Both the position numbers and the translations under genes were made by a program. Source: Macrostomum hystrix (taxonomy: Eukaryota > Animalia > Platyhelminthes). Taken from it: DNA of 64,000 bases. Position 1 is the stretch's first letter, and every line of letters begins with the position of its first letter. The stretch lies in assembly GCA_950097015.1 (NCBI GenBank), contig CATNEN010000014.1, positions 1 to 64,000 of the forward strand, written 5' to 3'. This document shows positions 1,872 to 32,820 of this stretch, piece by piece. The notes under the pieces were generated by a model, which had not been told where the DNA came from, did no database searches, and saw nothing but the letters and a program-made list of their open reading frames with translations.

Positions 1872-2143
1872 CCCTAACCCTAACCCTAACCCTAACCCTA
1901 ACCCTAACCCTAACCCTAACCCTAACCCTAACCCTAACCCTAACCCTAACCCTAACCCTAACCCTAACCCTAACCCTAACCCTAACCCTAACCCTAACCC
2001 TAACCCTAACCCTAACCCTAACCCTAACCCTAACCCTAACCCTAACCCTAACCCTAACCCTAACCCTAACCCTAACCCTAACCCTAACCCTAACCCTAAC
2101 CCTAACCCTAACCCTAACCCTAACCCTAACCCTAACCCTAACC

Positions 2144-2184
<41 letters not shown>

Positions 2185-5100
2185 CCCTAACCCTAACCCT
2201 AACCCTAACCCTAACCCTAACCCTAACCCTAACCCTAACCCTAACCCTAACCCTAACCCTAACCCTAACCCTAACCCTAACCCTAACCCTAACCCTAACC
2301 CTAACCCTAACCCTAACCCTAACCCTAACCCTAACCCTAACCCTAACCCTAACCCTAACCCTAACCCTAACCCTAACCCTAACCCTAACCCTAACCCTAA
2401 CCCTAACCCTAACCCTAACCCTAACCCTAACCCTAACCCTAACCCTAACCCTAACCCTAACCCTAACCCTAACCCTAACCCTAACCCTAACCCTAACCCT
2501 AACCCTAACCCTAACCCTAACCCTAACCCTAACCCTAACCCTAACCCTAACCCTAACCCTAACCCTAACCCTAACCCTAACCCTAACCCTAACCCTAACC
2601 CTAACCCTAACCCTAACCCTAACCCTAACCCTAACCCTAACCCTAACCCTAACCCTAACCCTAACCCTAACCCTAACCCTAACCCTAACCCTAACCCTAA
2701 CCCTAACCCTAACCCTAACCCTAACCCTAACCCTAACCCTAACCCTAACCCTAACCCTAACCCTAACCCTAACCCTAACCCTAACCCTAACCCTAACCCT
2801 AACCCTAACCCTAACCCTAACCCTAACCCTAACCCTAACCCTAACCCTAACCCTAACCCTAACCCTAACCCTAACCCTAACCCTAACCCTAACCCTAACC
2901 CTAACCCTAACCCTAACCCTAACCCTAACCCTAACCCTAACCCTAACCCTAACCCTAACCCTAACCCTAACCCTAACCCTAACCCTAACCCTAACCCTAA
3001 CCCTAACCCTAACCCTAACCCTAACCCTAACCCTAACCCTAACCCTAACCCTAACCCTAACCCTAACCCTAACCCTAACCCTAACCCTAACCCTAACCCT
3101 AACCCTAACCCTAACCCTAACCCTAACCCTAACCCTAACCCTAACCCTAACCCTAACCCTAACCCTAACCCTAACCCTAACCCTAACCCTAACCCTAACC
3201 CTAACCCTAACCCTAACCCTAACCCTAACCCTAACCCTAACCCTAACCCTAACCCTAACCCTAACCCTAACCCTAACCCTAACCCTAACCCTAACCCTAA
3301 CCCTAACCCTAACCCTAACCCTAACCCTAACCCTAACCCTAACCCTAACCCTAACCCTAACCCTAACCCTAACCCTAACCCTAACCCTAACCCTAACCCT
3401 AACCCTAACCCTAACCCTAACCCTAACCCTAACCCTAACCCTAACCCTAACCCTAACCCTAACCCTAACCCTAACCCTAACCCTAACCCTAACCCTAACC
3501 CTAACCCTAACCCTAACCCTAACCCTAACCCTAACCCTAACCCTAACCCTAACCCTAACCCTAACCCTAACCCTAACCCTAACCCTAACCCTAACCCTAA
3601 CCCTAACCCTAACCCTAACCCTAACCCTAACCCTAACCCTAACCCTAACCCTAACCCTAACCCTAACCCTAACCCTAACCCTAACCCTAACCCTAACCCT
3701 AACCCTAACCCTAACCCTAACCCTAACCCTAACCCTAACCCTAACCCTAACCCTAACCCTAACCCTAACCCTAACCCTAACCCTAACCCTAACCCTAACC
3801 CTAACCCTAACCCTAACCCTAACCCTAACCCTAACCCTAACCCTAACCCTAACCCTAACCCTAACCCTAACCCTAACCCTAACCCTAACCCTAACCCTAA
3901 CCCTAACCCTAACCCTAACCCTAACCCTAACCCTAACCCTAACCCTAACCCTAACCCTAACCCTAACCCTAACCCTAACCCTAACCCTAACCCTAACCCT
4001 AACCCTAACCCTAACCCTAACCCTAACCCTAACCCTAACCCTAACCCTAACCCTAACCCTAACCCTAACCCTAACCCTAACCCTAACCCTAACCCTAACC
4101 CTAACCCTAACCCTAACCCTAACCCTAACCCTAACCCTAACCCTAACCCTAACCCTAACCCTAACCCTAACCCTAACCCTAACCCTAACCCTAACCCTAA
4201 CCCTAACCCTAACCCTAACCCTAACCCTAACCCTAACCCTAACCCTAACCCTAACCCTAACCCTAACCCTAACCCTAACCCTAACCCTAACCCTAACCCT
4301 AACCCTAACCCTAACCCTAACCCTAACCCTAACCCTAACCCTAACCCTAACCCTAACCCTAACCCTAACCCTAACCCTAACCCTAACCCTAACCCTAACC
4401 CTAACCCTAACCCTAACCCTAACCCTAACCCTAACCCTAACCCTAACCCTAACCCTAACCCTAACCCTAACCCTAACCCTAACCCTAACCCTAACCCTAA
4501 CCCTAACCCTAACCCTAACCCTAACCCTAACCCTAACCCTAACCCTAACCCTAACCCTAACCCTAACCCTAACCCTAACCCTAACCCTAACCCTAACCCT
4601 AACCCTAACCCTAACCCTAACCCTAACCCTAACCCTAACCCTAACCCTAACCCTAACCCTAACCCTAACCCTAACCCTAACCCTAACCCTAACCCTAACC
4701 CTAACCCTAACCCTAACCCTAACCCTAACCCTAACCCTAACCCTAACCCTAACCCTAACCCTAACCCTAACCCTAACCCTAACCCTAACCCTAACCCTAA
4801 CCCTAACCCTAACCCTAACCCTAACCCTAACCCTAACCCTAACCCTAACCCTAACCCTAACCCTAACCCTAACCCTAACCCTAACCCTAACCCTAACCCT
4901 AACCCTAACCCTAACCCTAACCCTAACCCTAACCCTAACCCTAACCCTAACCCTAACCCTAACCCTAACCCTAACCCTAACCCTAACCCTAACCCTAACC
5001 CTAACCCTAACCCTAACCCTAACCCTAACCCTAACCCTAACCCTAACCCTAACCCTAACCCTAACCCTAACCCTAACCCTAACCCTAACCCTAACCCTAA

Positions 5101-6874
5101 CCCTAACCCTAACCCTAACCCTAACCCTAACCCTAACCCTAACCCTAACCCTAACCCTAACCCTAACCCTAACCCTAACCCTAACCCTAACCCTAACCCT
5201 AACCCTAACCCTAACCCTAACCCTAACCCTAACCCTAACCCTAACCCTAACCCTAACCCTAACCCTAACCCTAACCCTAACCCTAACCCTAACCCTAACC
5301 CTAACCCTAACCCTAACCCTAACCCTAACCCTAACCCTAACCCTAACCCTAACCCTAACCCTAACCCTAACCCTAACCCTAACCCTAACCCTAACCCTAA
5401 CCCTAACCCTAACCCTAACCCTAACCCTAACCCTAACCCTAACCCTAACCCTAACCCTAACCCTAACCCTAACCCTAACCCTAACCCTAACCCTAACCCT
5501 AACCCTAACCCTAACCCTAACCCTAACCCTAACCCTAACCCTAACCCTAACCCTAACCCTAACCCTAACCCTAACCCTAACCCTAACCCTAACCCTAACC
5601 CTAACCCTAACCCTAACCCTAACCCTAACCCTAACCCTAACCCTAACCCTAACCCTAACCCTAACCCTAACCCTAACCCTAACCCTAACCCTAACCCTAA
5701 CCCTAACCCTAACCCTAACCCTAACCCTAACCCTAACCCTAACCCTAACCCTAACCCTAACCCTAACCCTAACCCTAACCCTAACCCTAACCCTAACCCT
5801 AACCCTAACCCTAACCCTAACCCTAACCCTAACCCTAACCCTAACCCTAACCCTAACCCTAACCCTAACCCTAACCCTAACCCTAACCCTAACCCTAACC
5901 CTAACCCTAACCCTAACCCTAACCCTAACCCTAACCCTAACCCTAACCCTAACCCTAACCCTAACCCTAACCCTAACCCTAACCCTAACCCTAACCCTAA
6001 CCCTAACCCTAACCCTAACCCTAACCCTAACCCTAACCCTAACCCTAACCCTAACCCTAACCCTAACCCTAACCCTAACCCTAACCCTAACCCTAACCCT
6101 AACCCTAACCCTAACCCTAACCCTAACCCTAACCCTAACCCTAACCCTAACCCTAACCCTAACCCTAACCCTAACCCTAACCCTAACCCTAACCCTAACC
6201 CTAACCCTAACCCTAACCCTAACCCTAACCCTAACCCTAACCCTAACCCTAACCCTAACCCTAACCCTAACCCTAACCCTAACCCTAACCCTAACCCTAA
6301 CCCTAACCCTAACCCTAACCCTAACCCTAACCCTAACCCTAACCCTAACCCTAACCCTAACCCTAACCCTAACCCTAACCCTAACCCTAACCCTAACCCT
6401 AACCCTAACCCTAACCCTAACCCTAACCCTAACCCTAACCCTAACCCTAACCCTAACCCTAACCCTAACCCTAACCCTAACCCTAACCCTAACCCTAACC
6501 CTAACCCTAACCCTAACCCTAACCCTAACCCTAACCCTAACCCTAACCCTAACCCTAACCCTAACCCTAACCCTAACCCTAACCCTAACCCTAACCCTAA
6601 CCCTAACCCTAACCCTAACCCTAACCCTAACCCTAACCCTAACCCTAACCCTAACCCTAACCCTAACCCTAACCCTAACCCTAACCCTAACCCTAACCCT
6701 AACCCTAACCCTAACCCTAACCCTAACCCTAACCCTAACCCTAACCCTAACCCTAACCCTAACCCTAACCCTAACCCTAACCCTAACCCTAACCCTAACC
6801 CTAACCCTAACCCTAACCCTAACCCTAACCCTAACCCTAACCCTAACCCTAACCCTAACCCTAACCCTAACCCT
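1872..6874. repeat. Telomeric repeat array (CCCTAA)n, about 833 units, internal to the window
   Basis: 49 perfect units (1872-2165), one extra A at 2166, 784 perfect units (2167-6870), then CCCT. Confidence 0.99.
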
Positions 6875-6987
6875 CTCTTCCTTTCTCTCCCTTCCTCGCC
6901 ACTAGAGGGGGCCGCAACCTCCAGGGCCTGATCGCCCCGACTAAACTCCGTACTCCACTCCCCTCTATCCCGGAATACGACCCTGTC

Positions 6988-7195
6988 GCTAACCCTAACC
7001 CTGACCCTACCTAACCCTAACCCTATTTAACCCTAACCCTAAATAACCCTAACCCTAAATAACCCTAACCCTATATTACCCTAACCCTAGCCAACCCTAA
7101 CCCTAAATAACCCTAACCCTAGCTAACCCTAACCCTAAATAACCCTAACCCTAAATAACCCTAACCCTAACTAACCCTAATCCCTATTTAAACCT
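6988..7195. repeat. Degenerate telomere-derived minisatellite (about 16-bp unit CCCTAACCCTAnnTAA)
   Basis: CCCTAA alternates with CCCTAAATAA, CCCTAGCTAA or CCCTATTTAA. Confidence 0.85.
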
Positions 7196-7739
7196 CTTTA
7201 GATCCCTTTGTTTCACCTATAGACAATTTTCCCATATTACCACGATACTACTCTTCTATATGACTGCTCTCCCACCCTTGTAAAGTCCTTAATCTCTATG
7301 CTACGAGTTTTAACGTGTTTTACGGTGTTTTAAAGCTAACCCTAACCCCTAGCCTATGTCTAACTCTAGCCTTCTGCATTTTTATCCTCTATTTCTTCTC
7401 TTATTCTCCTATCTTTAATCTGCTTCATTGTTTTATTCTTTACCTACTTTTCTACCCCCCGATATGTAGTGAAATTTGTATTTTTTAATTTTTAATTCTT
7501 ACTTTCTACCCACAATGTATTACTCGTATTTCATTAGTAGTATTCATAGCGCTAATTGATATTTTACACTTTTAAAATTTAGTCAACACGTATTTTTTAG
7601 GTATTTTCTAGGTTATTATTATTGCACCCGAGTGAGCCCATTTTTCTTATATGTAAACCAATGCAACTCTTTTTTAACCCACTTTTTCACTGCCAATATC
7701 TACAATATTTACAATATTTACAATATTTACAATACATTC

Positions 7740-7779
7740 GCTCCTGAAGAAGGCTGAAGACAGCCGAAACGCGTCGAGC
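7740..7779 (+). ncRNA. Minimal type I hammerhead ribozyme (Penelope-like-element type)
   Basis: GCTC-CTGAAGA-A-GGCTG(AAGA)CAGCC-GAAA-C-GC-G-TC/GAGC. Core CUGANGA at 7744-7750, 5-bp stem II, GAAA at 7766-7769, palindromic stem III ACGCGT, GUC cleavage after 7775, 4-bp stem I GCTC/GAGC. Confidence 0.8.
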
Positions 7780-7860
7780 ATACCCTATTTATTTTGTTCC
7801 CCGTCTTGCTTAATTATTTCTCGTCTGTTGATTGGCTGCCGGCCTCGGAACCCTCCTAGT

Positions 7861-7897
7861 CCTAACCCTAACCCTAACCCTAACCCTAACCCTAACC

Positions 7898-7938
<41 letters not shown>

Positions 7939-7984
7939 CCCTAACCCTAACCCTAACCCTAACCCTAACCCTAACCCTAACCCT
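7861..7984. repeat. Short telomeric tract, about 20 CCCTAA units
   Basis: Perfect units with one extra A at 7920, ending in CCCT. Confidence 0.97.
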
Positions 7985-8065
7985 TTTTTCAAGAAATTAA
8001 GAAATGCAAGAAATTAGGGATTTTGAAGTAGGGATTTAGAATCAGGGAAGCCGTGTTCGGGAAGC

Positions 8066-8470
8066 TCACTCGGAATCAGACATGCTGTCGTAGCCTGATT
8101 CCGAGCCTAGCTGCTGCCACCACCCTGCGGGCTCTGGTAGCTCGATGCCCTGAGCTGCCAGCAAGTCCCGAACGCGCTGCTGCGTGGGCGGGCCCTGAAC
8201 TACATAATAGGCCCCTTCTTGCATCTCAACGATGCTAATGCCGGGTGTGGCTTGGATTGCCGCGTGCCGGTTATGGTAATCGGCGATCAGCTGCATGGCC
8301 TCATCGATCCCGGCCGTTGGGAGCGCCTGATAGGCCAGCCACATCAGTTCGCAGACGCCGCCGCAACCGTCTACGATGGCGGCTATACCGTCATGTATAG
8401 CCATGCGGACGGCGCTGGCGTGTCCATCATACTCGGCCATCGGAAATTGGGTCTTCCTTCTCGCAGACAT
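8066..8470 (-). CDS. Hypothetical 134-aa protein of unknown family
   Basis: GC-rich island in AT-rich flanks, ATG start, natural-looking composition and an acidic C-terminus. No motif recognised. Confidence 0.4.
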   Translation of the reverse strand: MSARRKTQFPMAEYDGHASAVRMAIHDGIAAIVDGCGGVCELMWLAYQALPTAGIDEAMQLIADYHNRHAAIQATPGISIVEMQEGAYYVVQGPPTQQRVRDLLAAQGIELPEPAGWWQQLGSESGYDSMSDSE

Positions 8471-9494
8471 GGTTTGCTGAAAAAAAAATTAATTATGAAT
8501 TTAGGCCTGTGCAAAGCACGTAATAAAGCATGCTATCTGTTTTCCTTAAACAAAGCAACCAGGGGTAATATATCATAATCTGCTCTATGACTCTACTAAT
8601 TAGTAGTATAAAATGGAAAATTTGATTTTCTGGCTTGGTAGTATTCAAATTAGAATACATCCTAATTTAGCCCTAAAACTTTTACTTTAAAAAATCTAAC
8701 GAATATGAAGAGTTGTTCCTTAACAAAGAGCTATTTGCTAAGCCCTTAAAGCATCTTTTACTTAAAAAAACGCAATGACATTATGAGATAAAAAACTGAA
8801 CAAATATTACAGCGCAGTGGCGCTTTATTGTTTAGTAGGCGCATCAATCAACGCATAAATGATATTTTAGCCTTGCATTGAAGTATTCACATGCAGCACA
8901 AACTATTTGGCAAAGAAGTTTGGAACTGTAGCACAAAGAAATGCTGTCGAACGCATAAATGCTTCATTTATTAAATTTGATAAGCAAAATGGACGCCTGA
9001 AAAAGAAGTTGAGAACTGCAAAACTCAGACGCCAAAAGTAAATACTCGTAAATCTACACTTAACTGATGCATTTAGAGTACCTGAACATGATGTAATAAA
9101 GATTTGCGCAAATGTTCACCCCTGCTGCTTGTAATACCAGTAGAAACGTGCCGTTCGGAAGTCAAATCCCTCGTTCGGTTTGAAGATCCCACAGAATCTT
9201 CGTTCGGATCGAGCACTAAAATATATTTTTTTTCGAGTTGTATTTGCTTGAAAATATGGGTTTTATGTTTTTCTGAAAGAAAAAATTGTTTTACACAACT
9301 TTTAAAAAGTTTGAATTTTACAGCTAGTAAGATAAAAAAGTTATTGCTAGTTAAGTTTTCAAAAGCACAACATTCTTGTTCGGTTGATGATGCTTTACCC
9401 TAGCTTGATTTAACATAATTATATATTTTACATTGCATTATATAATTTTTGCATTTTATATATTAGGCACTAGTGCAACTAGAAGAGGGGATAG

Positions 9495-9791
9495 CTGAGA
9501 GAATTCAATCCCCGAAAAAACTTCCCCTCTGCAACGGACCGCGAAATTACTGACTGCGTAGCAAAGACTCTGCATAATTCTCGTGACCGCGGTTCTGATT
9601 CCAGACGAATTCTGTCCTATCATCAAAGGGCAGGATATTATGCTGGCACTGCTTCCGTTGCTGCAACGCCTTCCGAGGCGGATCATTCTGGTCCTTCTGC
9701 AAAGCGCCGCAGGGCACGTTCGGCTGCAGGTGGTCAACACAAACAAGGCAGACGTGTGGCGATTGTTAGCGATAGCGACAGTGAAAACTAA
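9495..9791 (+). CDS. Probable terminal exon of a transposon-associated DUF4806-like gene
   Basis: 99-codon stop-free frame after an AG (LREFNPRKNFPSATDREITDCVAKTLHNSRDRG...SDSEN*). It resembles by eye the C-terminal helix motif of DUF4806-type proteins. Confidence 0.35.
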   Translation: MREFNPRKNFPSATDREITDCVAKTLHNSRDRGSDSRRILSYHQRAGYYAGTASVAATPSEADHSGPSAKRRRARSAAGGQHKQGRRVAIVSDSDSEN

Positions 9792-9899
9792 TATACCGAC
9801 GATGAAGTCCATACACTCTGCTTTTGCAACTTTTTCAAAAACGTTATCACTGTGAAGGGGAATTTTTTATATTTAATTTTTTCATACAAATGTGAGTCA

Positions 9900-10075
9900 T
9901 TTTGTCAAACCGGATAAATTGTGTTTAAATTCTGGGTAATTTTGGTCGAATCTGGGGTAATGTTGGTCAAACCTGATTTATTTTGTTCAGATTCGGGGGT
10001 AATGTTGGTCAAACCAGATTTATTTTGTTCAAATACGGGGTAATTTTGATCAAATGCGGTTTGTTTTGGTCAAAC
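9900..10075. repeat. Degenerate ~20-bp minisatellite (TTTGGTCAAA / GGGTAAT motifs)
   Basis: Recurrent ttggtcaaac, ggggtaat and ttttgttca blocks. Confidence 0.6.
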
Positions 10076-10299
10076 TAAAGTTTAATTCAATTCCATCAAT
10101 GAAAATATACTCGTAAAATTTAATCGGTCGTATTTATTTAAAGACACTTCGGAAAAGGAAAAATATAAATGCAATGAAGTCTCGAAATGTGCAGCTTTGA
10201 CTTTGACTGCTTCATTTGACTGCTGATTAGAAATCATTCTCTAACTTCTAATTTCTAAAATCTTCCGCTGATACAGAGTACAAATATATTGCAAAAATC

Positions 10300-10479
10300 T
10301 GCTAGGGGTTAGCCCCTATAAGCTACATTTTACTAGGGTCTTAGAAGGGGATTACCCTTAACCAACCCCTAGTTGCCCCTAGGGGTCCCCTGCCGAACCT
10401 GCTCTCATTCCCCTAGTCATCCCCTATCGTTCCCCGAGGTGTAACCCCGAGGGGTCCCCTAGTGTTTTTGCCAGTGGGG
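10300..10479. mobile_element. Probable DNA-transposon right terminus (CACTA/EnSpm-like)
   Basis: Ends in ...TTTTTGCCAGTGGG (reverse complement CCCACTGGCAAAAA), preceded by many CCCCTAG/CTAGGGG-type subterminal motifs in both orientations. Confidence 0.4.
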
Positions 10480-10521
10480 AGAACCCAGCAATAATAAGTA
10501 CCATTGAGAATATGTACTCAT

Positions 10522-11576
10522 AACCTTATAGAGAGAATTAATTTTAGAATCTGCAAGTCGATTCTGCAAGTTAGTCCAAACACTGACAGCAATGGTGCTC
10601 GGTCCGAATTAGGAAGACTACCACTATTATATAGTATTCAAAAAAGAAGCCTTCAATACTGGTCCTCAGTTCGGAGCCGACCAGACTCCATCATCGCGAA
10701 ATTGGTGGCAGACACAGAATACAGCGATGTTGGAATTGGGGAAAAATGAATAGTGAAGTAATGCGGAATTGTCAACAGACTAGAAAAACAAAGTCCATCA
10801 AATCGCTCAGAGAGAATTTTGAGTCAGAGTTTCGAAGGCACTGGACTCAGAGGATGGGAAAATCCGCCAAGCTCAGCCACTTCTATTACACGTTTAAGAA
10901 AGATTTCTCCCGAGAAAAGTACCTAACAATAATCTCTAACCCAGAAAAAAGGCGCACAATGTCCCGATTTCGTCTAGGAAACCACAAACTGGCCTGTGAG
11001 ACATTGCGCACTGTAAGACCGAAAATCGCCTATGAAAACAGAACATGCCCAAAATGTAGAGTCGAGGTAGAGAACGAAACTCATATTCTCTTTAGATGCG
11101 ATTGGTCTGTTTATGTTCCAATTAGAAATAAATTTATAGAGAAAGTAGCAGGTACTGTTCGAAATTTCGAAAGCCTAACAGCTGATGACAAAATTGTGTA
11201 TTTAATGACACAGGAAAGCATAGAATTAACAGAAAGTTTTGTGGACTTCATAGAAAGCATAATTAAAGCTAGATAAAAAGCCACTGCCCTGAGGCCCATA
11301 GTTAGAATGCGAAAACACAATAGCTATTCTCATTTCGGTCAGTTTTAATTTTTCCTTTAAATTTCAATATTTCATTTCTTGTTTTAATGCCTTTGTTTAT
11401 TTCAAAAATTTGTTTTTTTTCAAATATTTTATTAACCTAAAATTATTACGCATGCTACTGTTTTCCTATCGCCTTCTCTTAAAAAAATCGATTTGTTTAA
11501 CCTCAAACATAAAATAAACAAAAAAATCAGCACCCAATCGGCGTGCGCACCTCAATAATAATAATAATAATAATAA
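10522..11576 (+). mobile_element. 3' fragment of an L2/CR1-like LINE (ORF2 C-terminus, 3' UTR, (AAT)n tail)
   Basis: CPKC...ETHILFRC zinc-finger-like C-terminus, a 1-bp frameshift near 10746, and an (AAT)n tail at about 11555-11576. Confidence 0.85.
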
Positions 11577-12120
11577 CATAGCTAAGAAATATTTCGGATA
11601 AAAAAACATTACTACAGACATGCTATTTGGCCTCGAAGCTCAACTTTAAGCTCAAGCTCAAGCTCAGAGGTTAGGTACGATTCGGGCATTCATGTGCATT
11701 CTCTTGTTCTTAACGATAGAAGTCCATGTCATACACTTTATTATGAGTTGCGCTATGAAAGTTTAAGAGTCCCGAAGTAACTCTCACCCTCGTCAGGACC
11801 ACCGACGTATGCCTATGTCAGAGTAGTAAAATTTTCAGGGGACATGCAATATCTGCTAGGTCATGAGCATACTCTGTTTTTAATGGCTCTTATAAGAATG
11901 TTTAAAGTCAATTGTTACTCGGAGAATAATATCAAAAGAAATTATAAAAGTATTTTAGTGGAAATATTAGGGACTATTCGCCCGTTACGAGGGGCATTTC
12001 GCCCCTCATAATTATAAGCCCATCTTGACTACTAGACATCGTCGCTCAGTAGAGTGATCAACGGTTAGGTACGATTGGGGCATTTAAGTGCATTCTCTTG
12101 TTCTTAACCATAGAAGTCCA

Positions 12121-12671: not shown

Positions 12672-12789
12672 CCTGCCGGGCAACGCACAAGTGACTCGAC
12701 CTCTCCTGCCGGGCAGCGCACAGGTGACTCCACCTCTCCTGCCGGACAGCTCACAGGTGACTCGACCTCTCCTGACGGACAGCTCACAG
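12672..12789. repeat. 33-bp tandem repeat, about 3.5 copies (mirror at 29323-29440)
   Basis: Unit CTGTGAGCTGTCCGTCAGGAGAGGTCGAGTCAC and variants, read on the right-arm copy. Confidence 0.85.
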
Positions 12790-27795: not shown

Positions 27796-29483
27796 TGGTA
27801 GGGAGAGCGCGTGGCTTCATGTTTATGATATGAAGAAAACCACAGATTTATTGTGCGAGAGCGAATCAACTCTCAGAGCTCCACGCTCCTGAGTTCGGCG
27901 GTTTTTATGTTTTAAGCTTGAACGATAGACGATGGCACGTTTGGTGCAAGGATTTGGGGTGATAAAAGAGCGTACATTGATGTAACATAGTCAGTTAGAC
28001 ACAATCAACCTCAACCTACAGCGCGGTGTACTTAGTGTGATAGTTTCCTATTATAGTTTTCTGTTCCTGTCTTGGCAGCTAACTCTGCCTTTTTACAGAG
28101 GTTTTGCGTTTTGGTCATCGCGGTGATTTTAAGAGTTGGTTAATGTAATTCAATTGTTCAATTCGAATTTGCTTGCAATTGCGCCTGTTGGATTTTGTTG
28201 AGGAGGTTTCGATCTTTTGGTGGGGGTTGTGAGAGGCTGCGGGTGTTTTCACGCGCCGCCCCGACTTATAATTTGTACCACCCTTTTGCATCTTTAAATA
28301 GACAACTTGAGCGCAGTTGCGCGGCACGTTTTCGGTTAGTGCTCTGGCTGCGGCCGAGACTGAAACCCCTTCTGAGTTTATCAGAATGTCACACATTGAT
28401 TGTCAAAATTCATTATAAATACGAGCGTATGGTCAGTTTATCATCCTCTCCCCCTATCACTCGGCTTGATTTTTAAAGTAAATAAGCACTTGAGTTTGGT
28501 GAGCATACTTATAGAGGCATGAGGCATATGCCTCTTTTCTTAGCTAGAAAGCTAACGGCCTTTAAAATTCTCTTTCCACACTTAAGTACCTCACGCTTAA
28601 CTTATCAGCATGACCTTGAACTTATCAATTTATCAGCATGAACTTATCAGCGTGACCTCGCAGGGTAGAAAAGCATGATTGTTGATTACATGTTTTTTAT
28701 TTGCTGTCAGTTAGGATTCTTAGTCCTTTTCGCAAAAATCTCTATTTTGTCATTTCGCCAGTGACCTTTCTGTTACATTTTGGCAACATAGATAGTTATT
28801 AAGCTTTTGGTTTTCTAAACTTATAAATTCAAAAGTTAAAAATTATTTGAATACCCTTTTCTCTGTAAAGTGATGAGAATTTGCTAAAAATTCATTGCTA
28901 GGCATTGCTAAAAAATTTCTGGAACTTAGACAATGCCTAGTGAAAACTACGTACGTTAACTGCAATCTAGTTGCAATCTCGTCTAATCCGGCAATCTAGC
29001 AATCTAACAAATTGCTTATACATTTAAATGGTTGTTTCGGCCTTCAAAACGAAGTATCTTTGTGATCACGGCTAGTGCTAATTATACCTCACTCATGCTA
29101 CGAGTATAACTTGTCTTCAGTGACTGATGTAGCAGCCTACCTGTCACCAGCTTGATACGTGTGCTATAGAAGTAAAATTAGGTATTCGCAATTCAATCGG
29201 ATTTAGGCGTCATTTAAGTATCGGAAATTCCGACAAGAATCCGATCGGATTGAACGAGACAATTTCACTATAAATTCCGATCAGATGCTCCGACCGGATT
29301 CCGAGAAACCGTTTTTAGTGGGCTGTGAGCTGTCCGTCAGGAGAGGTCGAGTCACCTGTGAGCTGTCCGGCAGGAGAGGTGGAGTCACCTGTGCGCTGCC
29401 CGGCAGGAGAGGTCGAGTCACTTGTGCGTTGCCCGGCAGGTGGAGCGAGGCTTGCGAAAGATACTTTAACTTAGGCGTGCCTG

Positions 29484-29991: not shown

Positions 29992-30535
29992 TGGACTTCT
30001 ATGGTTAAGAACAAGAGAATGCACTTAAATGCCCCAATCGTACCTAACCGTTGATCACTCTACTGAGCGACGATGTCTAGTAGTCAAGATGGGCTTATAA
30101 TTATGAGGGGCGAAATGCCCCTCGTAACGGGCGAATAGTCCCTAATATTTCCACTAAAATACTTTTATAATTTCTTTTGATATTATTCTCCGAGTAACAA
30201 TTGACTTTAAACATTCTTATAAGAGCCATTAAAAACAGAGTATGCTCATGACCTAGCAGATATTGCATGTCCCCTGAAAATTTTACTACTCTGACATAGG
30301 CATACGTCGGTGGTCCTGACGAGGGTGAGAGTTACTTCGGGACTCTTAAACTTTCATAGCGCAACTCATAATAAAGTGTATGACATGGACTTCTATCGTT
30401 AAGAACAAGAGAATGCACATGAATGCCCGAATCGTACCTAACCTCTGAGCTTGAGCTTGAGCTTAAAGTTGAGCTTCGAGGCCAAATAGCATGTCTGTAG
30501 TAATGTTTTTTTATCCGAAATATTTCTTAGCTATG

Positions 30536-32820
30536 TTATTATTATTATTATTATTATTGAGGTGCGCACGCCGATTGGGTGCTGATTTTTTTGTTTATTT
30601 TATGTTTGAGGTTAAACAAATCGATTTTTTTAAGAGAAGGCGATAGGAAAACAGTAGCATGCGTAATAATTTTAGGTTAATAAAATATTTGAAAAAAAAC
30701 AAATTTTTGAAATAAACAAAGGCATTAAAACAAGAAATGAAATATTGAAATTTAAAGGAAAAATTAAAACTGACCGAAATGAGAATAGCTATTGTGTTTT
30801 CGCATTCTAACTATGGGCCTCAGGGCAGTGGCTTTTTATCTAGCTTTAATTATGCTTTCTATGAAGTCCACAAAACTTTCTGTTAATTCTATGCTTTCCT
30901 GTGTCATTAAATACACAATTTTGTCATCAGCTGTTAGGCTTTCGAAATTTCGAACAGTACCTGCTACTTTCTCTATGAATTAATTTCTAATTGGAACATA
31001 AACGGACCAATCGCATCTAAAGAGAATATGAGTTTCGTTCTCTACCTCGACTCTACATTTTGGGCATGTTCTGTTTTCATAGGCGATTTTCGGTCTTACA
31101 GTGCGCAATGTCTCACAGGCCAGTTTGTGGTTTCCTAGACGAAATCGGGACATTGTGCGCCTTTTTTCTGGGTTAGAGATTATTGTTAGGTACTTTTCTC
31201 GGGAGAAATCTTTCTTAAACGTGTAATAGAAGTGGCTGAGCTTGGCTGATTTTCCCATCCTCTGAGTCCAGTGCCTTCGAAACTCTGACTCAAAATTCTC
31301 TCTGTGCGTTTTGATGGACTTTGTTTTTCTAGTCTGTTGAAAATTCCGCATTACTTCACTATTCATTTTTTCCCCAATGCCAACATCACTGTATTCTGTA
31401 TCTGGCACCAATTTCGCGATGATGGAGTCTGGTCGGCTCCGAACTGAGGACCAGTATTGAAGGCTTCTTTTTTGAATACTATATAATAGTGGTAGTCTTC
31501 CTAATTCGGACCGAGCACCATTGCTGTCAGTGTTTGGACTAACTTGCAGAATCGACTTGCACATTCTAAAATTAATTCTCTCTATAAGGTTCCGATCCCA
31601 AGTACCCAGTTTCCAGGAGACAAAGGCTCCCCAGGCCTCTGATGCATAGAGAACTATGCTTTCAATCATAGTTGTGCTAAACAGGATGAGCTGTTTGTGT
31701 TTTACTCTCTGAAATCCCGCCAACTTTCTCAGAAGCATTATTGGATATCCACTTTTTTTACCTAGTTCTATGGCATGAGTATCTATTGTTCCCTTCACGT
31801 TCATGTGAAACCCAAGATATTTCGACTGCTGTACGGGTTCAACCAGTTGACCATGTAAAAACTGTCTATGTGTTGCCCTTGAGTGGAGATTGCAGCTCAG
31901 AAGCTTTGTCTTCTCAGTGTTTATTTCTAATTTATGAGTATTGCAAAAATCTGCTACTTTGTCGAGGCCTTTTTGTAATTCTGTCAGGTCTTCACAAAAA
32001 ATGACTAAATCGTCACAATAAAGCAGGTTGTTTACTTCTTCATTCAATATGGAGGTATGGCTTTGAAAGGAGTTTTTTAGGATTGTGCTTAGCGGGTCGA
32101 TGTATAAGGAGAATAGCAGTGGAGATAGGGGGCATCCTTGCCTGACGCCATTAGTGATTCGACACGCCTCAGTAGCTGTGCCTTCTGACACCTTGAGGTG
32201 AAATTTAGCGCTTGAGTACATATTCTCAATGGTAGTTATTATTGCTGGGTTCTCGCCCAACTGCTTTAATCGTGTGACTAGGGTTGGGTGGTGAACCATG
32301 TCAAAGGCGCTTTTTAAATCAAAGAAAACTAAATGGAAAGGTCTTTTCTTTTTCTTCTTTTTATGAACTAATGTCAATAGGGTTGCAATGTGATCGGAAG
32401 TCGGGCAGCCTTTTCTGTTTCTGTTTCAAAGCAAGTTCAGGGCTTTGATGTGTGCTTCTAATTTATCGTAAACAATTGATGCAAACAGTCTCGCGATGGC
32501 TGGCAGGACGCTTATTGGTCTGTAGTTTTTTGGATCACTGCGAGACCCCTTCTTGTATATTGGGCTTACCAATGCTAGTGACCATTGCTCAGGAGTATAT
32601 CCAAGCCTAAGGATTGAGTTGAATAGCTTCTGCAGAGCGGGCTTGAAAACTGTGAGGCCATAAATGATGTGCTCGTTTGTTATTCCGTCAACTCCTGCTG
32701 CCTTTTTCTTCTTTAGTTTTTTCACTGCCTTATCAATTTCCTGGGTGCTGACTGTTGTGTCTGTAAAGATTTTTGGGTTTGGTGGATGCCCTCGGAGGCA
32801 TCTGACTGAGGGTTGCTGAC
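30536..32820 (-). mobile_element. 5'-truncated L2/CR1-like LINE with RT domain, degenerate
   Basis: KAAGVDGI...NYRPISVL, FFDLKSAFD, GVRQGCPLSPLLF and YCDD motifs. Broken between 32377 and 32426, premature stop at 30980, (AAT)n tail. Confidence 0.9.

Follow-up and report, generated by a model that had tools for sequence, protein, structure and literature searches.

Positions 7366–7860 of the window, i.e., the first 64 kb of contig C14 in a 220-Mb genome of 42 contigs, are probably a copy of a short (~0.5 kb), non-coding Penelope-like retroelement (PLE) whose retrotransposition is primed on telomere repeats. Its reverse transcriptase (RT) would be provided in trans or by an element that is missing from the assembly. 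This copy, referred to as unit B, contains a hammerhead ribozyme near its 3′ end and lies in a stack of stubs between two telomeric tracts.

The distal tract at 1872–6874 was (CCCTAA)833.7 and 99% perfect by TRF, while the proximal tract at 7861–7984 was (CCCTAA)20.5; in other copies 1 to 4.5 units were found at the latter position. The proximal tract may consist of 3′ repeats that belong to the element, of what remains of the older telomere, or of both. The original prediction had described the region between the tracts as a pyrimidine-rich, 1-kb segment that was the single 3′ stub of one long element. Its accounts of the 5 kb of (CCCTAA)n on the distal side, of the 20-unit tract after the hammerhead and of the composition (64% pyrimidine in 6875–7860 vs. 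49% in 8000–12000) were all borne out, but the single stub was not. Judged from its sequence, 6875–7984 is a stack of three different stubs (6875–6995, 7190–7335, and 7366–7860) with telomere-like repeats between them, all read on the + strand. The outermost stub is 121 bp long, represents a third repeat type and has no hammerhead. Its 5′ side is pure telomere and its 3′ side is TAACCCTAA. The only other copy of this stub, at C39:106086–106209(+), was 98% identical and was likewise followed by TAACCCTAA. Next come variant telomere repeats at 6996–7186, which by TRF consist of 11.9 copies of the 16-mer TAACCCTAACCCTAAA, and the 146-bp stub of another sequence type at 7190–7335, named piece A. 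A genome search found piece A only in the window and at the end of contig C7, where it starts at the identical base after telomere as in the window. Approximately 30 nt of telomere-like repeats (7336–7365) then lead into unit B, which is ~495 bp long, starts with TAGCCTTCTGCATTTTT and closes with the conserved 3′ end GCCGGCCTCGGAA..CTCCTAGTCC. Just 5′ of the hammerhead, unit B contains a 9-mer repeat, (CAATATTTA)4.6 at 7694–7734 by TRF, which is kept in other copies. The 3′ tail (7780–7860), which separates the hammerhead from the telomere repeats, is 81 nt long, close to the 85 nt given previously, and its last ~28 nt were conserved in 8 copies, including the window's own, which was missed by the search pattern because of a 1-nt deletion.

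Several other features were observed around these tracts. Non-telomeric DNA lies distal to the 5-kb tract, joined to the C-rich strand, at positions 1–1871 of the window. Such DNA was also found distal to the telomere tracts of C7 (last 2.4 kb) and C9 (1–207), i.e., on three contigs in all. Its polarity cannot be reconciled with the healing of a break, and our guess is a chimeric terminal read in the assembly. The junction at 1871 of the window cuts a tRNA-like SINE (1608–1870), copies of which are dispersed. The telomere tracts of C14 and C7 were of nearly equal length (833 vs. 831 units). At C9:6760–6810, the proximal telomere end turns from CCCTAA to ~30 bp of TTAGGG, which is a short head-to-head telomere junction. 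Further inside the window, 10522–12000 and 30112–31591 form an inverted repeat of ~1.5 kb with 99% identity. The ~18 kb between its arms holds a BEL/Pao retrotransposon with gag, protease and integrase ORFs at 15.5–25 kb. An RVT_1 ORF at 30983–32425(-) overlaps one of the arms, and the 33-bp tandem repeats at 12672–12789 and 29323–29440 mirror each other.

The hammerhead at 7740–7779(+) is of the minimal type I. Sequence reading placed it at the coordinates predicted, with core, helices and cleavage site all present. It is composed, in order, of helix I GCUC, the core CUGAAGA, an extra A, helix II GGCUG-AAGA-CAGCC, GAAA, CGCG, UC, and helix I GAGC. The conserved core CUGANGA … GAAA … UH is correct in both order and spacing, and cleavage is predicted between 7775 and 7776, following UC. 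The one additional A separates A9 from helix II; certain natural hammerheads that are active have such an insertion, as does the hammerhead of an endonuclease-bearing (EN+) PLE of this genome (L043). Helix III is the 6-nt palindrome ACGCGU. Cofolding of two copies predicted a double hammerhead at −32.3 kcal/mol vs. 2 × −12.8 kcal/mol for the monomers, with an intermolecular helix III of 6 bp. The short palindromic helix III, which is ACGCGU in this first family and AGCGCU in a second family described below, would allow an active dimer, and this dimer-dependent design is that known from PLE hammerheads. Rfam hammerhead covariance models found no match in the window, at either the gathering score or E ≤ 10, for which the hairpin-less helix III may be the cause.

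A genome-wide search with the pattern CTCCTGAAGA-N8-30-GAAACGCGTCGAG returned 7 exact matches vs. none with the pattern read backwards as a control. Moreover, a strict structural scan of both strands of ~250 kb of fetched DNA returned the telomeric copies and one unrelated PLE hammerhead, and nothing else. A metagenome scan with the exact motif yielded one match, in a GC-rich bacterial coding contig without helix II, which was taken as chance. Covariation among the copies, which the original prediction had named as one test of its reading, was evident in helix II. The three helix II sequences found among the 7 exact copies (GGCUG/CAGCC, GAUC/GAUC, and GGGAA/UUCCC) are all complementary, and compensatory changes on both sides were found at four of five pairs. 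In the alignment, 94% of helix II cells were paired vs. 24–39% when the partner was slid by 1–3 columns, and the observed covariation score was reached by 0 of 500 shuffles. The core and helix I were invariant, and helix I thus carries no covariation information. The flanks of these hammerheads, however, diverged to 77–91%. Taken together, the invariant core, the compensatory changes in helix II and the diverged flanks suggest that the hammerhead is under purifying selection, and the sequence evidence argues for a real and conserved structure, more than chance would produce.

All 7 exact copies were located less than 55 kb from four contig ends with telomere repeats. According to the genome motif scan, the copies near the starts of C14 (7.7 kb from the end) and C9 (52 kb) are on the + strand, while those near the ends of C7 (8.0, 8.3, and 33.7 kb) and C41 (7.0 and 7.5 kb) are on the − strand, such that the 3′ end always points inward. 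Since the stretches up to 55 kb from a contig end make up 2.1% of the genome, the probability for four independent loci is ~2e-7. All four ends, three besides that of C14, carry telomere tracts of 2.8–6.6 kb in the matching orientation. A few interior copies were found on C10 at 2.25 Mb and on C3 at 5.55 Mb, each beside short CCCTAA runs. All 7 exact copies showed the polarity predicted for a terminal element, whose 3′ end faces inward along the chromosome, and the predicted confinement to telomere-bearing ends. Dispersed homologs linked to GIY-YIG PLEs had been considered as an opposite outcome; the copies were not dispersed and no GIY-YIG ORFs were linked to them.

Every identified unit of the first family closes with one and the same tail (GGCCTCGGAA..CT.CTA.GTCC), which is followed by 1, 1.3, 2, 4.5, or 20 CCCTAA units, in agreement with the reverse-complement telomeric repeats foreseen at the 3′ end. 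The spacing between hammerhead and telomere repeats ranged from 81 to 85 nt across copies, with 6 nt in one copy (C7:13472260). The 3′ ends are constant while the 5′ ends vary: they fall at the window equivalents of ~7366, ~7575, and ~7690, inside the hammerhead, and at ~7782, and the shortest copy, on C9, retains 35 nt. Most of the 5′ ends come directly after telomere repeats or after the tail of the preceding unit, which produces head-to-tail stacking; two unit starts, U4 on C7 and U5 on C41, abut the end of a Maverick instead. In the second family, named X, ~380 nt separate the start from the hammerhead and the tail measures ~85 nt; helix III is GCGC instead of CGCG, and the end is GGATCNGTNCCTAACTCCTAACC. 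Family X shares no sequence similarity with the first family except the hammerhead, yet follows the same plan. Its units are interspersed with those of the first family in the same orientation on C7, C41, and C9, and were also found on C3 at 5.55 Mb, where two of their ends are 7.3 kb apart.

Side observations were made next to these units. One sequence (TTTGCAAACTTGTCCATGTACATTTGGGG…), at C9:52570 onward and C3:5559116 onward, comes after the telomere-repeat tail of a unit, which is of family 1 on C9 and of family 2 on C3; it is either a further element that adjoins telomere repeats or belongs to a block that was duplicated. The C7 end (11.4–15.1 kb from the end) and C9:8.5–14.2 kb have a ~178-bp subtelomeric satellite in common. 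The Maverick/Polinton at C7:13472677–13489168 is 16.5 kb long and contains polB, endonuclease VII, an rve integrase with a chromodomain and a TBP-like ORF. It has inverted ends, telomere-like flanks on both sides and a 6-bp ACCCTA direct repeat, which can be read as a target duplication but is ambiguous by 3 nt. Its sequence is that of an ordinary, independent integrase insertion at an X-unit/B-unit junction. A 99.5% identical copy at the C41 end is cut inside the element and is directly capped by telomere repeats, as expected of a Maverick that was broken internally, with chromosome healing at the break. The idea that C7 and C41 carry a Terminon with viral cargo was rejected in view of the Maverick's own inverted ends, the possible ACCCTA duplication and the healed C41 copy.

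The start of unit B at ~7366 recurs in different surroundings. In the window and at the C7 end (U1 and U2), it comes after telomere-like repeats; it also follows the tail of another unit on C41 (U6) and the Maverick end on C7 (U4). Further samples of this organism, represented by DNA contigs only, contained this start after two kinds of unit tail, one of these junctions having no counterpart in this assembly, from which it follows that the unit arrays differ between samples; several loose ends in those contigs were Nextera adapter sequence and not biology. Unit B appears to be of full length because this 5′ start is found in four or more contexts, while random truncation would not repeat one base. 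It also reads as complete because family X is of equal length and no copy in the whole-genome DNA search continued further 5′; the longest copies found there were ~0.5–0.7 kb. Thus, by its sequence, unit B looks like a complete non-coding element of ~495 bp and not like a truncated long one. The 5′ truncation foreseen in the original prediction is seen in those copies that begin at different points, while unit B itself looks complete.

Whether the copies extend into an EN-less PLE RT had been posed as a check. The copies do adjoin (CCCTAA)n as expected, but none of those in the assembly reached an ORF on the 5′ side. No RT or other ORF was linked to any copy of the hammerhead unit, either among the listed ORFs of the four contig ends or in the whole-genome DNA search, and Pfam searches with 19 of the largest ORFs at these ends identified no PLE RT without endonuclease. 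These 19 ORFs included Maverick polB, integrase and others, BEL/Pao, and LINEs. The ORFs that adjoin units were of two kinds, Maverick/Polinton genes and fragments of EN+ PLEs, of which the fragments on C9 carry GIY-YIG. When compared with the whole genome, a PLE RT fragment from C14:121.5 kb had interior copies only, and GIY-YIG was present in all five PLE RT copies examined, one of which came from a closely related family while the other four were distant. No RT was enclosed between the two family-2 ends on C3. Overall, no EN-less PLE RT was found among the PLE RT matches examined, with a few of the 84 contig ends inspected.

These results bear on a rival explanation, in which a long, autonomous, EN-deficient PLE of the Athena/Coprina/Terminon type left the units as its true 3′ stubs, its RT-bearing copies being missing or collapsed in the assembly. 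Their 3′ module matches this family, 5′ truncation is the rule in it, and the inspected ends are few of 84; we nevertheless regard such a parent as unlikely, given that units in four or more contexts have one and the same 5′ start, that the second family is equally ~0.5 kb long, and that neither a copy extending further 5′ nor an EN-less PLE RT was found in the searches described above. A further reading, in which both families of ~0.5-kb non-coding units are "telomeric retrozymes," is possible and is put forward tentatively. In this case, the units would be complete RNAs that bear a hammerhead of the dimer type, end in a CCCUAA tail and are copied onto chromosome ends by a foreign enzyme, either telomerase or the RT of a PLE working independently of the PLE endonuclease. 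If so, they would be a regular component of subtelomeres and a reserve means of protecting chromosome ends.

Telomere repeats on both sides and a single orientation relative to the repeat would also be expected of elements that insert into telomeric arrays. TRAS/SART of silkworm, which nick telomere repeats, provide the model for a second rival, in which a retroelement with an endonuclease nicks CCCTAA/TTAGGG repeats and carries the units, as its non-autonomous passengers, into existing arrays, and attachment to a free end does not take place. The carrier in this genome would be a GIY-YIG PLE with a preference for repeats. Full-length EN+ PLEs with RT, GIY-YIG and ORFs of 712–865 amino acid residues were observed within long tetranucleotide microsatellites at C1:5.55 Mb, C37:3.2 Mb, and C24:0.58 Mb, each with a hammerhead whose helix III is AUAU or AUUU. 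That EN+ PLEs sit in a microsatellite (SIYL reading frames flanking L041–L043), that the hammerhead of one of them (L043) starts with CUGAAGA-A-GGCC as in the telomeric units, and that the interior unit copies lie beside short CCCTAA runs all speak for such insertion. However, several junctions have just 7–11 nt of telomere-like sequence between a unit tail and its 5′-truncated neighbor, which leaves little target for an endonuclease. Moreover, the units have no sequence in common with the flanks of the GIY-YIG elements beyond the hammerhead core, and neither poly(A) at the unit 3′ ends nor an adjoining APE-type ORF was detected. Site-specific insertion is therefore considered improbable, somewhat more so than the long parental element.

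The ends of C14 and C7 have piece A, unit B, and the telomere boundary in common at ~85% identity, which points to shared ancestry, and part of the spread of the units can thus be attributed to duplication of chromosome ends. Despite this sharing, a unit-X arrangement common to C7 and C41, and a C3 region at 5.55 Mb that is a 96% paralog of the C9 subtelomere, it is quite unlikely that the units are merely a relic piece of a PLE pseudo-LTR spread as a subtelomeric repeat by recombination or break-induced replication without retrotransposition of its own, since duplication leaves unexplained the constant 3′ end with many 5′ ends, most of which abut telomere repeats or a unit tail, the same layout in two unrelated families, and the purifying selection on the hammerhead amid diverged flanks.

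For the short retroelement primed on telomere repeats, which remains the preferred explanation, we infer an RNA intermediate, priming on the telomeric overhang and a copying enzyme. The unit RNA would fold into the minimal hammerhead near its 3′ end, followed by the 81-nt tail and a CCCUAA run. The CCCUAA repeats would base-pair at the G-rich 3′ overhang of the telomere or at a nicked G-strand, and an RT would extend the 3′-OH there along the unit RNA, which would leave the 3′ end of the copy facing the centromere. Telomerase would then cap the 5′ end thus created, which is often truncated. The stack at 6875–7984, and similar ones at the three other chromosome ends, could have arisen from such rounds in succession, in which two or more further sequence types took part. 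The likeliest source of the RT is a PLE acting in trans or an EN-less PLE missing from the assembly.

Telomere-attaching PLEs are the closest living relatives of telomerase. Published records of them come chiefly from bdelloid rotifers, fungi, and a few protists and plants (PMC8557442; PMC6431247; PMC13159263). Here, four chromosome ends of an animal whose telomeres are of the vertebrate type have the same 3′ module, on short units without an enzyme of their own. If active, these units would provide a small, tractable RNA for studies of priming on the telomeric overhang, of the purpose of the hammerhead, and of the identity of the copying RT. In addition, the stacks of units are a dated record of past erosion and repair of chromosome ends.

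Similar to the units of this study, TRAS/SART are found in telomeres in one orientation, and they are telomere-repeat-specific LINEs. Both TRAS/SART and HeT-A/TART encode an APE-type endonuclease and an RT and end in poly(A). Different from them, no APE ORF, RT ORF, or poly(A) was seen at the units. HeT-A/TART of Drosophila are likewise telomeric retroelements in one orientation (PMC5537684).

The pseudo-LTR hammerheads of EN+ PLEs are also of the minimal type I, with a very short palindromic helix III and a need for dimers (Cervera and de la Pena, 2014, as cited in PMC8557442). In this genome, hammerheads with GAAACGCGUC numbered 152 vs. 3 in the control and were scattered inside contigs. Different from the telomeric units, they have other helix I sequences and no telomere repeats after them. 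The one examined with intact flanks adjoins an ORF with RT and GIY-YIG, and GIY-YIG was also present in more distant PLEs with a different helix III. Non-LTR retrozymes, which have been proposed to be non-autonomous derivatives of PLEs, are likewise short, non-coding and hammerhead-bearing and need an RT in trans (bioRxiv 10.64898/2026.07.22.740005). Retrozymes, however, are dispersed or form uniform tandem arrays and are thought to move via circular RNA (bioRxiv 10.64898/2026.07.22.740005), whereas the units described here are restricted to telomeres, have telomere-repeat ends, and form stacks of unequal, truncated copies split by telomere repeats.

The closest resemblance is to the EN-deficient PLEs, in which reverse-complement telomere repeats lie 3′ of a 3′ hammerhead, 5′-truncated copies are capped by telomere, and head-to-tail arrays are formed (PMC8557442; PMC6431247). 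On the basis of sequence, every DNA-level feature in this description is found in the units. Similar to the units, Athena/Terminons of bdelloid rotifers and Coprina of fungi, diatoms, and spike moss have a 3′ hammerhead followed by reverse-complement telomere repeats, and they too are located at chromosome ends with the 3′ end inward, 5′-truncated, telomere-capped, and arranged head-to-tail or interspersed (PMC8557442; PMC6431247; PMC13159263). Different from Athena/Terminons and Coprina, however, the units have no linked RT or any other ORF, are ~0.5 kb long with a recurring 5′ end, and belong to an animal with TTAGGG telomeres; the repeats, which follow the hammerhead immediately in those elements, start 81–85 nt after it in the units. 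The host is taken to be a metazoan because it has a BEL/Pao element, a type not known outside animals. The assignment to Athena/Coprina draws on the 3′ module alone, and membership of the endonuclease-deficient PLEs is putative. The telomere-attaching 3′ module of PLEs was already known; it takes a new form here, as short RT-less units in two families, and occurs in a TTAGGG animal. We read the units as an Athena/Coprina/Terminon-like 3′ module carried on short, probably non-autonomous elements.
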